Shown piece by piece: positions 40,936 through 48,035 of a stretch of 64,000 nt of DNA. Position 1 is the first letter of the stretch. Each line of letters opens with the position of its first letter. The notes under the pieces were generated by a model. That model was not told the DNA's origin and ran no database searches. It saw only the letters and a program-made list of their open reading frames with translations. Source of the DNA: Oikopleura dioica (Eukaryota > Animalia > Chordata); contig OU015567.1 of the NCBI GenBank assembly GCA_907165135.1, forward strand, positions 1,488,001 to 1,552,000, given 5' to 3'. The position numbers were made by a program, and so were the translations under genes.

Positions 40936-41532
40936 TTACTCTTCTGGTTCTTCTGGATAGACGCAGATTGCGGCAGGTGAAGTATCTCCAGGGATCTGCA
41001 AAAACGGAATATCCGCACGCATACAAGTGCATTCAGTTTGCACATCGCAAAGACAACTTTCCACGCAAGTGAGCATTTCCAACTAAAAAGATCATTGTCA
41101 AAAAATGCTTTTAAAATTTTCCGTCACCATGAACTTGTTGATGCAAATGGCTAACGGAATATCTCCAACAAGGATTCCTTCGTCAACAAGATGGTTGCAC
41201 AGCTCCATTCCAGCAGAAAAGTCTGGCTCGCAGATTCGACCACAGCCTTCTGGGCAACCAGTTTCTTCGTCAAAGTAGCAAGTGTTGAATTCTTCTTCCG
41301 CCTTCGCAAAGCATCTAATCAACTAAGTACAAGGTGATGTTCTCGGTAGTGATCTGAATTACCTGTAGTAATCGTCAGTTCCAGCTCCCCATTCGATTTC
41401 GCATCGAAACGCACTTCCAATGAGCTCCCGCTCACAGTCGACGAAGCATCTTGCTCCCTCGCTCAAGTGCATGCGAGAATCGAACAAAAGAGTTGCGCTA
41501 GAAGAAGCAATGATCCCTGCAAAAATCCTCAT
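40936..41532 (-). CDS. Secreted Cys-rich protein, tandem copy 3
   Basis: MRIFAGIIASSSA...CYFDEETGCPEGCGRICEPDF...CVYPEEPEE*. Confidence 0.8.
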
Positions 41533-41704
41533 TTTTTTTGAAAATCGTGACCTGTCTAATTCCTTCGCTGATTAAAGTAAGCAGAGCAGTTGCTGCTTTC
41601 TCATGCATTATCTCCTGCTCATGAATGAACTTTACAGCTCTTGAGAATACGAAAACAGGAGACAAAGAAAATTTTCTCTATTTATTTTTTGGTACAGGAA
41701 TAAA

Positions 41705-43241
41705 TTACTTCTTCTTTGGCTCAAGATACTGTCCTTCTTTAGGAAGAGCATGAGTTGGCAGACCGTTTTTGCCGACCCAGTCCTTTCGTGCTTCAGGGAA
41801 TCCGAGTTTGTAGGCTTTGATGATTTTAAAAAATGACTGCATCAAGTTGATGGAATAACGTAACTCCTAAAGAACTCTTTTTAAAATTTTTCCTGTAATG
41901 ACAACGGCAGATCCAAGACCAATATTATGTTGAAGAGCCAAATCGCAGTTCTCAACCTGTCTCTTGTCGGCTTCTCCTCGGAGTTGCCAGCAGAGCTCAG
42001 CGCATTGAGCAAGTCCAGTAGCACCAAGAGGATGGCCCTTGGAAATCAAGCCACCAGATGGGTTCACAACAACTCGGCCGCCGTAGGTATTGTCGCCAGC
42101 GTCGATGAACTCGCCAGCCTTTCCCTCGTCGCAGAGTTGGAGAGCTTCGTAAGTGATGAGCTCGTTGGCGGAGAAGCAATCGTGAAGTTCGACGACTTTG
42201 ATGTCCTTGGGGTTGATGCCGGCCTGAGCGTAGACTTTCTCAGCCGCGGTCTTGGAGCACTTGTAACCAGCAATTGTCATCAAATCGGTCTTTTCCTCGT
42301 CGAGGGAGCCAGGCAAGTCGGTAACCATAGCTTGGCCAACGATCTCGACGGCTTTGTGTTCAAGTCCATGCTTTTTGACAAAGTCCTCGGAGGCGATGAT
42401 GGCAGCCCCACCACCGTCAGAAGTTGGGCAGCAGTGCTGACGGGTGAGCATTTCAAAGACTTTCTTGTCCCCATCGACCTAGGAGAAATTGAAGATCGAA
42501 ATCAGGGAATAGTCCTACCTGTTCCTCGGTCATTTCAATTCGGAACTGAGAATAGGGGTTGTTGACGGAGTGGCGCTTGTTTTTGGCGGCAATCTTGGTG
42601 AAGTGAGACTGCTTCGTTCCATACTTTTCCATGTGCTCCTATAAAATTGATAACTAGCGAAGCGCTGAAATCTTATACTTTTCCAGCGTTGCCGAAGAAC
42701 TGTGCCGCCATCGGAGCAGGAGCGAAACCACCGACATTGATCATACATTCAGCGTGTTTTTCAAGAGGATTGGATCGATCGTCAAAGACGGTTCCGAGAG
42801 ATCCAGGCTGCATCTTTTCGAAACCCATGGCCATCGTGCATTCGGCCTGGCCTCCACGGACCATGTCGGCAGCCTGAAGAAGGGCAGTCGAGCCGGTTGA
42901 GCAGTTGTTGTTGACGTTGTAGATTGGGATACCGGTGAGGCCGAGTTGGTAAACCGCGCGCTGGCCGCAAGTTGAATCACCGTAGACGTATCCGACTGAA
43001 TATTTTGAAATGCAAGCTCACATTCACAACTAGTACCTGAGGCAGCTTCGACCTTTTCAAAGGGAATACCAGCATCCGCAAGGGCCGCTTCTCCAGCTTC
43101 TCGTCCCATATCATGATAGTCAAAGTCAATTCTTCGTCCTGGCTTCTCAAACTTAGTCATACCGACTCCAACGACGTATGCTTTTCGCTGAGCACTGGCG
43201 CATCGCACCACGGCTCGTCTCAACTGAGCGAGGTTCAGCAT
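41705..43241 (-). CDS. SCP2: SCP2/SCPx-type thiolase domain only (no SCP2 carrier domain)
   Basis: [21 protein letters not shown] (catalytic Cys), [42 protein letters not shown]. The last exon ends ...GQYLEPKKK*. Confidence 0.9.
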
Positions 43242-43717
43242 CTCTTTGGCAAGAAAAAAGGACTCTGCGCTTCGAGGTACTTCGCTGAAGTAAATACCAA
43301 GAAAAAAGCACAGCGAAGGAATTGCCAAAGGGGCGTGTTGGCATTTCTGGTAAATATTTGCGTCCATGGGCCAAAGATTGCTTTTTATAACAAATCTTGC
43401 TTGCTTTAGTTTAAATTTGGAGGCGAAAATATGAATGAAAATGGCATGAAATTATTCAAAATTGAATTTCAAATAAAATCATGCTGTTAAAAGTTTTCAG
43501 TGACTTTTGAGCTGTATTTGCTTATGAAAAAAAAAATGAAAAATAATCAGAAATACGAAGCAGTAAAATCATATCCATGAGGTAGGTAAAGATGAGCAAT
43601 TTGAAGAAGTATCAGAAAATGGAAAATAAACATAGTTGTTCAAAAGGCGGTAGGGATGAGTAATGGCAAATCTGTGTACTGTTAGTTTTTGCTGAACAAT
43701 TGATTTTGAACTTTGTT

Positions 43718-46700
43718 TCAATCACTTGGTACTGGTAGAAGCTTCGGCTCAGCCGAGTCCATTTTGGCGAGGTGCTCGGCGAAGGGAAAGGCGATGAAGT
43801 TATGCTACGAAATATTCAATAACGCAATCGAAACAGTAGAAAAGCTTACATTCACAAGAAGCCTCTGGATCTCCAAAACTTCGGGATGCTTTAGCGTGTC
43901 TTCATACATCTCCATCATCGACATATTCATGGGTATTTCTTCATTTGCAGTCCTGCTCTGCGCCCTCTCCCAACGATTGATGAAGTTATCGAGAATAAGA
44001 GCAACAAAGATATTGAGAATGATGACGGAAGACGATAGCCACCAGAGCACAAAATAAACCTAGATAAAGATCATTATTGTGAGAACGTACCCTTATAAAG
44101 TAATCTTTACAAAGTATGGATCAATGTATTTTTCCGTGATATTCTTCAAGGAGAAAATGATCACTGGGTTGGAACTTCTAACAAAAAAAAAGCTTCACTT
44201 GATAAATCACGACAGAAAGCTGTGTAAGCAAAATGAAGACCGTGAAAATTATCAAACCAAAAGTAAGCTTATAAACTATCTTGGAAAGCTTCGAAAAAAT
44301 TCTAGGGGGAAATAATTTCTGACGGGGTAAACAAAGCAGAAAGGATGATTGTAGAGGGAGAAAAGCTCATTTTAGATGGGCCTCTTCCAGGAACGGTTCA
44401 ATTTCAAGCAGACGATTCGAAAAAATAAATGTATAGAACCACAAAAAGGACTTTCTGGTCAATCAGTTGTTGAAACACGAGATGCGGTTTCTTCAAGGAC
44501 AGGGACGCGAAATTGTATATACAGAATCCCGTCCAATAAGTCGAGTCCCTCGTATTGCAGTACGACCAGGACTGAGGAAGACATCAAAAAAGTCGCATCA
44601 CTGCTCTTGAAACAGCCAGAAATGCCGTCACTAGTGGTTCCTGGGCCGATTCCGGAGGGCGAACTCGTTGGTAAGATCAAAAAATACATTTCTGGGTGAT
44701 AAAAACTCGAATTAAGCGATGAAAAAGATCAAAAAAGCGGCGGAAAAGATCATCGAAAACGATAAAGAGTACTTAAAAATGGATGTTATGAAGGTATGAA
44801 ATCAAAAAACAAATATTCTACCGACAAAAAATAAATTCTAGTTCTCTCAAGCCGCAGGACAATTACGAGACTTTGTCCTTGAAAATGAAGAAGATGATCC
44901 TCTCCTCAATTCTAGTGATGTTAATCCATTCACGCCTGATACCCTCTGCGTTCGATTCAAAAACTTGTTCTGTGCGAAAACTGAGTAAAATTTTACCTGA
45001 GTCCAAGTTGAGATTTCGGCAAATTTGTGAAGAAAGACGTGCCAGTTATTGACGACGAGTAGGTCCCATAGAGTCACTACTGATGCCCAGAAATCGTTAA
45101 AGTTATTACTAAAAAGTATTAGCTCGATCTTAAGGGACCCCGCCGACCGAGCTCCGCGCGCGCTTCTCGCTCTTTTTCACTCTCACTCTTCAGCTGGTTT
45201 AATTTTTTCGATTATCGTGATTTTTTGTACATGAACTAATCTTTTTATGCTCTTTCATCTCCATTTTTTAAAATTTTCATAGCTTATTGCAACGCTGAGT
45301 TAGGGCGAAAACATGGGCGCTCGATTTCAAGTGTACATAAGTACTCGAATTATTTGAATTGACACTTCGAGACTGCGTTCATTGAAAAGCCCGTGCCTTC
45401 TTGCATAAGGTTTACTTATTGAGATTTCCCGGAAGAGTTTACTTATCCGATTATCGTGGGATTAATGCGGGTTACCTGGAGCGCTCGGCGTGAAACACGG
45501 GCATTTTACACTGTTGGCGCGGGATTCCCGCTGCGCTGGTCAGAATAACCTTTAATTACCGCCCGATTACGAGAGCTGCATTAATTATAATTTAATCTCA
45601 ATAAGTAGGCCTTATGCAAGAAGGCACGGGCTTTTCAATGAGGGCAGTCTCGAAGTGTCAATCCAAATAATTCGAGTACTTATGTACACTTGAAATCGAG
45701 CGCCAATGTTTTCGCCCTAACTCAGTGTAGCAATAAGCTATGAACATTTTAAGAAATGGAGATGAAAGAGCATAAAAAGATTAGTTCGTGTACAAAAAAT
45801 CACGATAATCGAAAGAATTAAACCAGCTGAAGAGTGAGATTGAAAAAGAGCGAGAAGCGCGCGCGGAGCTTGGTCGGCGGGGTCCCTTAAGATGCTTCTT
45901 ACCTGTAGTAATCTAGTTGTGAGTAAGTTCCACAAGCGGTTTCATTCTTTAACAACTCCTGATGAAAAGGCCCGAAAGACAGGTTGCCGACAATAGCGAA
46001 AAGGTAAAACGCAGCCACTAGAATTCCCGCAACATGTTTTAAATTCTTCAAGGTATCAACGAGGGAGGATGTGACGAGATTTAGGACTTTTATCTTTGGA
46101 AGAATGCGCAGTAAGCGAATCGTGATGAGAATGTTGACGATGCGGGAGAAGACCCACAGCAGTTCGGTTGTTTTGTTTGTCACATTTGACTAAAAAGAAT
46201 ATAAGGAACCATTTTCTTCAAAATTGATGAGAGTAACCTTGTTAATTTCTATTTCAAGAAGTGTCTGAATGATGATTAGGGATGCGGCAACGAAGCTGTC
46301 GAAGAGAAAGTCAAGTCGTTGGCAGAAAATGATGCCATAAGCCCACATTTTCAAGAACTGTTCAAAAAGATAAAAGACCGAAATGGCGAGGTTGAAAATT
46401 CTGAGCTTTTTGAGCGCTTCTGTTCCAGGATCATCTACGTTTTGATGCTTTCTTTGGGGATAAAGGGCGATTTCGACGGACTTGAGAGGGGTTAGGAAAT
46501 GAACGGAACGAACTTATTTACCAGAGAAATAGCATTGATGATCGCAATCGCGTTTCCAATATGATCAAAGTTTGGATGGGTAACTTTTCGCTGAAGCGGT
46601 AGCAATCGTGGGTAGCGCGTCAGGACTGGTACCGGTGCATCTCTTCTCGTCTTGTAGGAAAGCTGCTTGAGAAGTTGCTTGTATTGAGAGAGGGTCAAGC

Positions 46701-48035
46701 GATCTTCGTTGTCCAAATTGCGGAGTATTTTTGGAATGTTTGTAAAGTTTTTACTGACCAAACTCAAGCTAGAATGATGATAACACCTCATTAATTGAAG
46801 AACAGTAGTATACCTGGATTTAATCGTTGAATACTTGATATCAACATGTTCTTTGTCTCGATTAAACTCTTCGTCGACAATGTTCTCCGCTTCTATCAGT
46901 TTGCAAAAGCTTCCAATAAATGCGAGTTGCCTCCTTTTCAACGAATTCTGCAGCGTTCTTTGGAGAAACCCGCGAAACTGATTGTAAATGACAGCGGTGA
47001 GCAAGTTCATAATGAGAAAAGTGCCGACAAAGGAAAAGACGATGAAGAAGATGGAGCAGAAGCGATTTTGCTTGTAAGAAGGCATCATTACATCTGGATT
47101 GTTTGCCGTAGTTAAGAGAACGAGGAGGGAGATAATCGCCGTATCAAGCGCCTCAAAACCAGTTGGATTGGCCAGCCAGTCATTTTCGGAGAGAGGGTCG
47201 TTTGGCGAAGGAGGGAGAATGAGCATTCCAATCATTGTGAAAAAGTAAAGATGGAATCCGAGAAGAAGAAGGACGCCAAGAATTTCTGGGACAGTCAAAA
47301 TGACCGATTTTAGCAACTTTTTCATCATCGAACTTGATTGAATAAAGATAAATGGCCTCAAAAGCCGCCTAAAATGATTTGAAAGCAAGTTTTCTCGGGA
47401 AAAGCTTACCTAAGTCGATATGTGTAGGTAGGAACGTGGAGGGAAATGATGATGTCGACGATAGAAACGAACACAGAGATAAGGACAAAGATCATCCAGG
47501 GCTTCTTTTTCATCGTTTTGATACCGACAAGCCAGGTTTCAAGGATCCCAAAGGCTCCTATCACCAGCAGACAGAAAATTTCTAGCGCTTCTGTCATCCC
47601 TCTAAATGAAAAAGAAAGAGAGAGCTTGAAAAGAGTTCTACGAACCTAGGAACTTCTGGTCGAATATATTTTGGATTTGTTGGATCCGGCGTTATCGTCA
47701 GAGAGTTGGGGTCTTCAAGGAAGGCGAGAAACAGAAGGGTGAACATGATGAAGCCCCGAAAAATCTTCATGCCGGTGGAATGAAAAATGCGGTAGAGCTT
47801 CATCTCGCTTTCAGTCCCCATCTTGTGCCCCATATCGCGACAGCTCATGCCGTCTTCTATCAGAAGAACAGCCTTATCGAGGGTTGAAAAATCGATTTTA
47901 CAAAGAGAGTTGTCCTCATTGAATTCCAACCTTTTCCTGATTCGTCAACAGCTCATATCGTTCTTTCGCGGTCAATAGGCCCGTCGGGCCGCTCCGAACC
48001 GAAGTTGGGTCCGAAATCAGCGACTGCTCGGACAT
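43718..48035 (-). CDS. TPCN2: Two-pore channel 2, multi-exon
   Basis: AVLLIEDG...LYR; filter 1 LLVLLTTANNPDVMMPSY; filter 2 LWDLLVVNNWH; SSVIILNIFVALILDNF; an N-terminal ExxxLL (ERYELL). Confidence 0.92.
45134..45886. mobile_element. 753-bp foldback element with TTAA TSD and GG termini, in a TPCN2 intron
   Basis: TTAA at 45130-45133 and 45887-45890. Near-perfect TIRs of about 295 bp (45134-45426 and 45593-45886). Confidence 0.9.

Follow-up and report, generated by a model that had tools for sequence, protein, structure and literature searches.

The nearest described counterpart of the gene discussed here is the SCPx protein of vertebrates and ascidians, exemplified by zebrafish SCP2-thiolase type-1 (6HSJ/6HRV) and by the Ciona intestinalis sterol carrier protein 2-like protein. 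SCP2-thiolases have an HDCF loop instead of NEAF, no CxGGGxG motif, a CxS cysteine and a GHP motif (PMC7682436). Here, we report on the SCP2-thiolase gene in a 64,000-nucleotide stretch of Oikopleura dioica DNA (assembly GCA_907165135.1, contig OU015567.1, positions 1,488,001 to 1,552,000; hereafter the window, whose own numbering is used throughout), and we propose that its product, which lacks both the SCP2 domain and a type 1 peroxisomal targeting signal (PTS1), is probably targeted to mitochondria. By sequence comparison, the gene is orthologous to the thiolase portion of animal SCPx (SCP2-thiolase type-1) and looks single-copy in O. dioica. Like the vertebrate and ascidian proteins, it has the thiolase core (63-64% full-length identity), the CxS, HDCF, GHP and HN fingerprints, and the core end YK(L/M)GFPEA. 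Unlike them, it stops in the linker with no SCP2 domain or PTS1, is predicted to be mitochondrial, and belongs to a clade whose proteins have 15-22 residues before strand 1 of the fold, where SCPx has 5-10.

Thiolases of this type that stand alone are found elsewhere. DAF-22 of C. elegans is an SCP2-type thiolase that has no SCP2 domain fused to it and is peroxisomal via a C-terminal PTS1. The O. dioica protein resembles it in being thiolase-only and differs in ending -KKK, in having an N-terminal leader and in coming from an animal without peroxins. DAF-22 has been termed the human SCPx homologue (PMC4966567). The trypanosomatid SCP2-thiolases type-2 (T. brucei 4BI9, Leishmania 3ZBG) also share the HDCF loop and have no SCP2 domain, but they are a distant paralogous type (exon 4 of the O. 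dioica gene matches them at E 2.5e-31, against 2e-85 for the zebrafish type-1 enzyme) and do not come from peroxisomal animal SCPx. Reportedly, in work by Mazet et al. of 2011, the trypanosomatid type-2 enzyme is mitochondrial. Its role is given as biosynthetic, in sterol synthesis (PMC5993337). Finally, AGXT and CRAT offer a parallel: in evolution, such enzymes switch between peroxisome and mitochondrion as an N-terminal presequence and a C-terminal PTS1 are gained or lost, and CRAT bears both signals (PMC4690255). Unlike these, the change proposed for O. dioica would go with the disappearance of the whole organelle, after which the domain that formerly bore the PTS1 would have been lost repeatedly.

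A sequence-only reading of the window noted that Oikopleura is reported to have lost peroxisomes, and this is backed by the published loss of all peroxins in O. dioica (PMC4690255), which is also noted for the OKI2018_I69 assembly (PMC8008620). In the survey by Zarsky and Tachezy 2015 (PMC4690255), O. dioica is the only free-living animal reported to be without peroxisomes, and the reviewers asked how it copes. The same text lists Scp2 among the surveyed enzymes, on which TargetP was run, and describes the enzymes retained in peroxin-less animals as being without a peroxisomal targeting signal. Scp2 is absent from the enzymes named there as restricted to species with peroxisomes, so that its occurrence in O. 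dioica is probably already contained in Figure 1b of that paper; retargeting or relocation is not mentioned in the text so far as it is available. Our literature search returned no other paper tying Oikopleura to SCP2 or SCP2-thiolase, and the clade-wide leader, the Arg site, the SCP2 forms without PTS1 and the repeated truncation presented below appear not to have been described in the searchable literature.

The coding span runs exactly from an ATG at 43241 to a TAA at 41707-41705 on the minus strand, which is the interval, 41705-43241, that the sequence-only reading had picked out. Five exons (43241-43037, 42995-42679, 42638-42519, 42478-41893 and 41814-41705) encode a protein of 445 amino acids. 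Pfam recognises Thiolase_N on exons 1-2 and Thiolase_C_1 on exon 4 (E 1.7e-36). The best solved match of exon 4 is the zebrafish enzyme, with an alignment that reaches the last residues of the exon (...GLGSAVVIT in O. dioica, ...GLGGAVVVT in zebrafish). The fingerprints HDCF, GHP and HN, on which the sequence-only reading had based its assignment, are present and, together with the CxS cysteine, invariant in all sequences of a 23-sequence alignment (A2). The predicted activity is that of propanoyl-CoA C-acyltransferase, a name which comes from automatic UniProt annotation.

What distinguishes this thiolase at its N-terminus is a leader of 20 residues that contains neither Asp nor Glu and has a net charge of +5 (counted over the 21 residues that precede strand 1) and a hydrophobic moment (muH) of 0.61 over 11 residues. 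It exceeds the equivalent ascidian and fish region by 11-16 residues. An AlphaFold2 model calculated on the alignment (mean pLDDT 80.5, pTM 0.87) places residues 4-17 in a helix outside the core and set apart from it, with a pLDDT of about 60, and begins strand 1 at residue 21. Within the leader, R13-C14 followed by A15-S16 fits the R-2 processing pattern, which is the site type of the mitochondrial processing peptidase (MPP), and R-x-A-(S/A) is kept in 13 of the 14 leaders of the clade described below. The segment that follows the proposed cut, ASAQRK, is equivalent to the short N-termini that ascidian and fish SCPx natively have, as seen in an N-terminal alignment (A1) of 14 O. dioica-group proteins, six ascidian or ascidian-like SCPx and one fish protein. 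No match to the type 2 peroxisomal targeting signal (PTS2) pattern R/K-[LVIQ]-x2-[LVIHQ]-[LSGAK]-x-[HQ]-[LAF] was found in the first 50 residues of these 21 sequences. Nor does the window leader resemble a secretory signal peptide, as it is broken by Arg8, Arg9 and Arg13 and has no uninterrupted hydrophobic core of about 7 residues or more. Thus the extra N-terminus that had been described as Arg-rich and acid-free is indeed so, and its likeness to a presequence finds support in composition, in the predicted helix and in the conserved Arg site, from which we infer mitochondrial import itself.

Is the leader part of the translated mRNA? The sequence-only reading had left room for translation starting downstream of it. 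In mRNA contigs from sister O. dioica lineages the leader is included, and ahead of the start (ATG TTG AAT...) these contigs follow the genome without a break for 29-58 nt. One of them, L005, opens 50-58 nt before the leader AUG with ACATGGGG, which looks like the remnant of a template-switching oligo. Because no ATG lies between about 43291 and 43241, no AUG precedes that of the leader in the mRNA of the sister lineages; by homology, the same would hold for the Okinawa lineage, to which the window belongs.

At the other end, the window protein finishes with ...EPKKK and a TAA, with no SCP2 domain and no PTS1 tripeptide ([SAC][KRH][LM]-like). This ending had been noted from the window letters, along with the possibility that transcripts splice onward to an SCP2/PTS1 exon. 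The ending stands, and RNA gives no sign of such splicing, either among the 20 raw reads that span the stop or in the sister-lineage mRNA contigs. These contigs have the TAA after ...PKKK, then AATAAA, and a poly(A) tail about 45 nt past the stop; therefore, no SCP2 or PTS1 exon follows. The 20 reads, which come from a lineage 90-95% alike, pass from the stop into the AATAAA-bearing 3'UTR in full accord (agreement 1) and encode the C-terminus ...EGEYLAPKKK. Among the downstream open reading frames (ORFs) in six frames, no SCP2-like ORF was seen, and the three of them scanned with Pfam gave no match. The tail of the O. dioica protein is the stump of the linker that precedes SCP2, since ...EPKKK and its stop line up with ...GQAKK/D... 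of two relatives (L003 and L009) that retain the domain.

These features are not confined to O. dioica. The relatives that we compared are environmental sequences from marine metagenomes and metatranscriptomes, and the maximum-likelihood tree was built on the thiolase core only, leaders and tails being left out. In this tree the 14 leader-bearing proteins form one clade (support 100/100), with the ascidians apart (99/96). The clade splits into O. dioica, P0121/L009 and P0135/P0136 groups, whose mutual order the tree leaves open. Over the 15-22 residues before strand 1, all 14 have a net charge of +3 to +5, with 0-1 acidic residues and a muH of 0.48-0.89; in the ascidians and the fish this region is of the type MGRK-VYVIGVG or MAPQERK-VYVIGVG (5-10 residues). 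The latter proteins have a C-terminal SCP2 domain and end in -AKL, -SKL or -PKL, and neither a PTS1 nor a PTS2 pattern is present in any of the 14 clade proteins. Clade leaders vary at nearly all positions except the Arg-x-Ala-Ser/Ala column (VVRC-AS, LGRT-AS, SIRH-AA, SLRQ-AS, LVRD-AS, IARQ-AS and AVRH-AS, for example), after which a linker of variable length leads to strand 1. Leader gain and PTS1 loss thus appear, from these sequences, to be common to the whole clade that contains O. dioica.

Most members of the clade are thiolase-only, and the position at which they stop in the linker varies: ...GEYS in P0121 and L002, ...PKKK or ...KKKK in the O. dioica group, and ...PKPSKK and ...PKKPKSPTV in the P0135/P0136 group. 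A complete SCP2 domain is kept in two lineages, one represented by the genomic contig L003 and the other by L009 (a full-length mRNA-like contig encoding 562 amino acids) with P0278 (566 amino acids, 40 member sequences). These forms carry the leader (MLSRGALQIARQ-AS..., MLAKKALSPVFKIVRN-AS...) and end in ...GNMGLAMKLQKLK (KLQKLK), without the PTS1-bearing tail of the ascidian ...NIMPAKPKL type. Because L009, which retains SCP2, groups as sister with P0121/P0129, which are thiolase-only (support 98/95), the SCP2 domain would have been lost at least twice, after leader gain and PTS1 loss, provided that it was not regained. The SCP2-retaining relatives resemble natural intermediate stages on the way from peroxisomal SCPx to the protein of O. 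dioica. A further protein, P0279, ranks second among the matches to the SCP2 domain of L009 and was set aside as an unrelated MFE2-like protein of 889 amino acids with two SCP2 domains and without the leader.

In light of this, how might the enzyme reach mitochondria and what might it do there? The leader would form an amphipathic helix (about residues 4-17) and work as a matrix-targeting presequence, with import via TOM/TIM23. MPP would cut after Arg13-Cys14 (R-2), before Ala15-Ser16, so that the N-terminus would return to its ancestral length. As a mature dimer, the thiolase would then cleave 3-oxoacyl-CoAs, 2-methyl-branched ones included, in the mitochondrial matrix, and the SCP2 domain, by then purposeless, would have been truncated at the linker at least twice. 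More tentatively, a plankton-tunicate clade, presumably Appendicularia, may have moved its SCPx thiolase to mitochondria before SCP2 was lost. It is likewise possible, if somewhat doubtful, that the steps of this move are kept in living lineages, first as leader and SCP2 without PTS1 (L009, P0278 and L003), then as leader and linker-truncated thiolase. The sequence-only reading went further and inferred salvage of a pathway by retargeting; that a whole pathway was salvaged is an inference here too.

Several points weigh against the mitochondrial proposal and the history built on it. The case consists of sequence and comparative evidence, and the localisation is a prediction. The segment before the proposed cut is short (14 residues), and the R-2 motif alone is a weak pattern. 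For the clade, the appendicularian identity of the environmental relatives is an assumption, and the position of the mRNA start in the Okinawa lineage comes from homology to Bergen-type mRNAs.

The alternative that survives best, although we consider it unlikely, is that the enzyme is cytosolic, the PTS1 and SCP2 domain having been lost along with the peroxisome and the extension being neutral or structural. The shortness of the leader and an AlphaFold2 confidence of only about 60 over residues 1-20 count in its favour, and Zarsky and Tachezy say only that the retained enzymes are without peroxisomal targeting signals (PMC4690255). A neutral extension is, however, not expected to behave as these leaders do, because their basic character and Arg column persist while the other leader positions change: charge, near-absence of acids and the Arg-x-Ala-Ser column are kept down to about 61% identity to the window protein, and the extension is confined to the clade that lost the PTS1.

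Less probable again is that the leader is an uncleaved or dual-localising targeting signal, with part of the enzyme pool possibly in the cytosol. ACAA2, the mitochondrial 3-ketoacyl-CoA thiolase, keeps its N-terminal signal uncleaved, and dual targeting is common among peroxisomal enzymes. One example of a dual-targeted peroxisomal enzyme is CRAT (PMC4690255), and the presequence proposed here is weak and short, at a net charge of +5. With a linker of varying length between it and strand 1, the conserved R-x/A-S column nevertheless has the look of a processing site, which speaks for the cleaved mitochondrial presequence. Very improbable, lastly, is that the public 600-amino-acid model is right in splicing the thiolase from ...EPKK into a downstream Cys-rich gene of secreted type: CAG5109787.1 does run ...EPKK-NATLLFDSRMH... 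into ORFs at 41532-41098, and a GT does follow the penultimate Lys codon, but a length of 445 amino acids and the ending KKK are common to the Bergen annotation and to at least six independent proteins derived from mRNA, the sister-lineage mRNA contigs have a stop, AATAAA and poly(A), the 20 reads cross the stop into the 3'UTR (the alternative joint being in none), the window itself has TAA and then AATAAA, and the fusion bypasses the neighbour's own start and signal-peptide-like N-terminus. OKI2018_I69 g4276.t1 (600 amino acids; window 41098-41708, minus strand) therefore looks like an annotation fusion.

A mitochondrial SCP2-thiolase in O. dioica would provide a concrete, testable case of a core peroxisomal beta-oxidation enzyme that keeps its catalytic site intact, loses its address and gains a presequence-like leader. 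The order of events, with leader gain and PTS1 loss coming before repeated SCP2 loss, suggests what SCP2 does in SCPx. If the whole clade moved its thiolase to mitochondria before SCP2 was lost, the SCP2 domain would owe its retention in SCPx chiefly to bearing the PTS1, and peroxisome loss, or the exit of branched-chain beta-oxidation from the peroxisome, would be ancestral to the clade and not specific to O. dioica. The SCP2-retaining relatives could serve as natural intermediates for import experiments. It may also be that phytol-derived branched-chain lipids from the algal diet are degraded in mitochondria in these animals.

Table 1. Features of the O. dioica SCP2-thiolase gene (window coordinates) and of its SCP2-retaining relatives (coordinates of the named contigs)
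Feature	Position	Strand	Basis
Complete coding sequence, SCP2-thiolase type-1 gene, 445 aa	41705..43241	-	Model from sequence; identity with CAG5109787.1; family matches
Inferred 5'UTR, with no ATG inside	43242..43291	-	Start near 43291 by homology with sister-lineage mRNA contigs
Putative mitochondrial presequence, codons 1-14	43200..43241	-	R-x-A-S column, charge, muH, predicted helix
Linker ASAQRK, codons 15-20, would-be mature N-terminus	43182..43199	-	Alignment A1
Intron 1, 41 nt, GT-AG	42996..43036	-	Joint in metatranscriptome contig
Cys100, nucleophilic cysteine of the CxS fingerprint	42901..42903	-	Invariant column; PMC7682436
Intron 2, 40 nt, GT-AG	42639..42678	-	Joint in metatranscriptome contig
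Intron 3, 40 nt, GT-AG	42479..42518	-	Colinearity with annotated and mRNA-derived proteins; no read across
HDCF loop, residues 313-316, in place of NEAF	42173..42184	-	Invariant; PMC7682436
GHP motif, residues 362-364	42029..42037	-	Invariant; zebrafish alignment
His398-Asn399 (QHN 397-399), in place of CxGGGxG	41924..41929	-	Invariant; PMC7682436
Intron 4, 78 nt, GA-AG, in-frame TAG inside	41815..41892	-	RNA joint 41814/41893
Exon 5 tail, linker remnant, without PTS1	41708..41814	-	Alignment with L003 and L009
AATAAA poly(A) signal, 19-24 nt past the stop codon	41681..41686	-	Sister-lineage mRNAs with the same layout and poly(A)
SCP2-retaining relatives, SCP2 fused to thiolase	L009:37-1722 and P0278; L003:2335-2775		

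The gene model itself agrees with independent annotation, the first 443 amino acids of CAG5109787.1 (Oidioi.mRNA.OKI2018_I69.chr2.g4276.t1) being identical to the 445-amino-acid protein and CBY08228.1 of the Bergen reference, also 445 amino acids long, being 95% identical to it. The match to CAG5109787.1 places the window on chromosome 2 of the Okinawa assembly OKI2018_I69. RNA contigs and reads bear out three of the four introns, the non-canonical GA-AG intron 4 among them. Marine metatranscriptome contigs, 95-99% alike, have the joints of introns 1, 2 and 4 as modelled, and the spliced form of intron 4 (...VVVT/AYK...) is found in 26 raw reads. The raw reads are oligo-dT reads from three bulk RNA runs of the 90-95% alike O. 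dioica lineage; they are 3'-biased, and none lies on 42067-43521. In the window, removal of intron 4 joins ...GLGSAVVIT to AYKLGF.... Models with a canonical GT-AG last intron (36 nt or 66 nt) were dropped because the RNA joins ...VVIT to AYKLGF... and the zebrafish alignment of exon 4 extends as far as ...VVIT. A GA...AG intron also occurs in the relative L003, where it follows immediately on the leader exon. The O. dioica gene is compact (1.5 kb, introns of 40-78 nt); the genomic contigs L010 (P0136 group) and L012 (P0132 group) have introns of several hundred bases and orthologues of 2.3 kb to more than 3 kb, while the introns of L002 and L003 are tiny.

Two other start codons were considered and rejected. 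An in-frame ATG at 43367 (MDANIYQ..., with a hydrophobic stretch) lies about 76 nt upstream of the inferred mRNA start, and mRNAs of the sister lineages start 50-58 nt ahead of the leader AUG, in a region that can be aligned with the window, the rejection thus resting on the sister lineages and not on Okinawa-strain reads. A start at Met28 (P0246, 418 amino acids) is the choice of a gene caller, the contig having the full leader in frame.

As for the neighbouring genes, three tandem paralogues encoding small Cys-rich proteins lie downstream on the minus strand, at 41532-41098, 40310-39877 and 39116-38540. Each has at least two short exons and a signal-peptide-like start of the form M(R/K)(I/V/F)FAG(I/L)IA(S/A)S(S/N)ATL(L/M)FDSRM.... 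Pfam gave no match for the three Cys-rich ORFs scanned (two exons of the first copy and one of the third). Upstream on the same strand, an Ion_trans gene of the voltage-gated or two-pore-type cation channel kind extends from 43590 to 47388 or beyond, and the RNA runs show expression of its last exons (joints 43616/43621 to 43743). In L008 (JGI metatranscriptome contig Ga0314681_10090372; P0244), an exon of this upstream ion-channel gene (...MEMYEDNLKNPELLDIQRLLVN) is joined inside codon 6 of the thiolase at a cryptic AG (CAG/CTG), so that MLNISQ is replaced; the corresponding window positions are about 43223 and 43830-43990. This joint suggests occasional read-through transcription from the upstream ion-channel gene.

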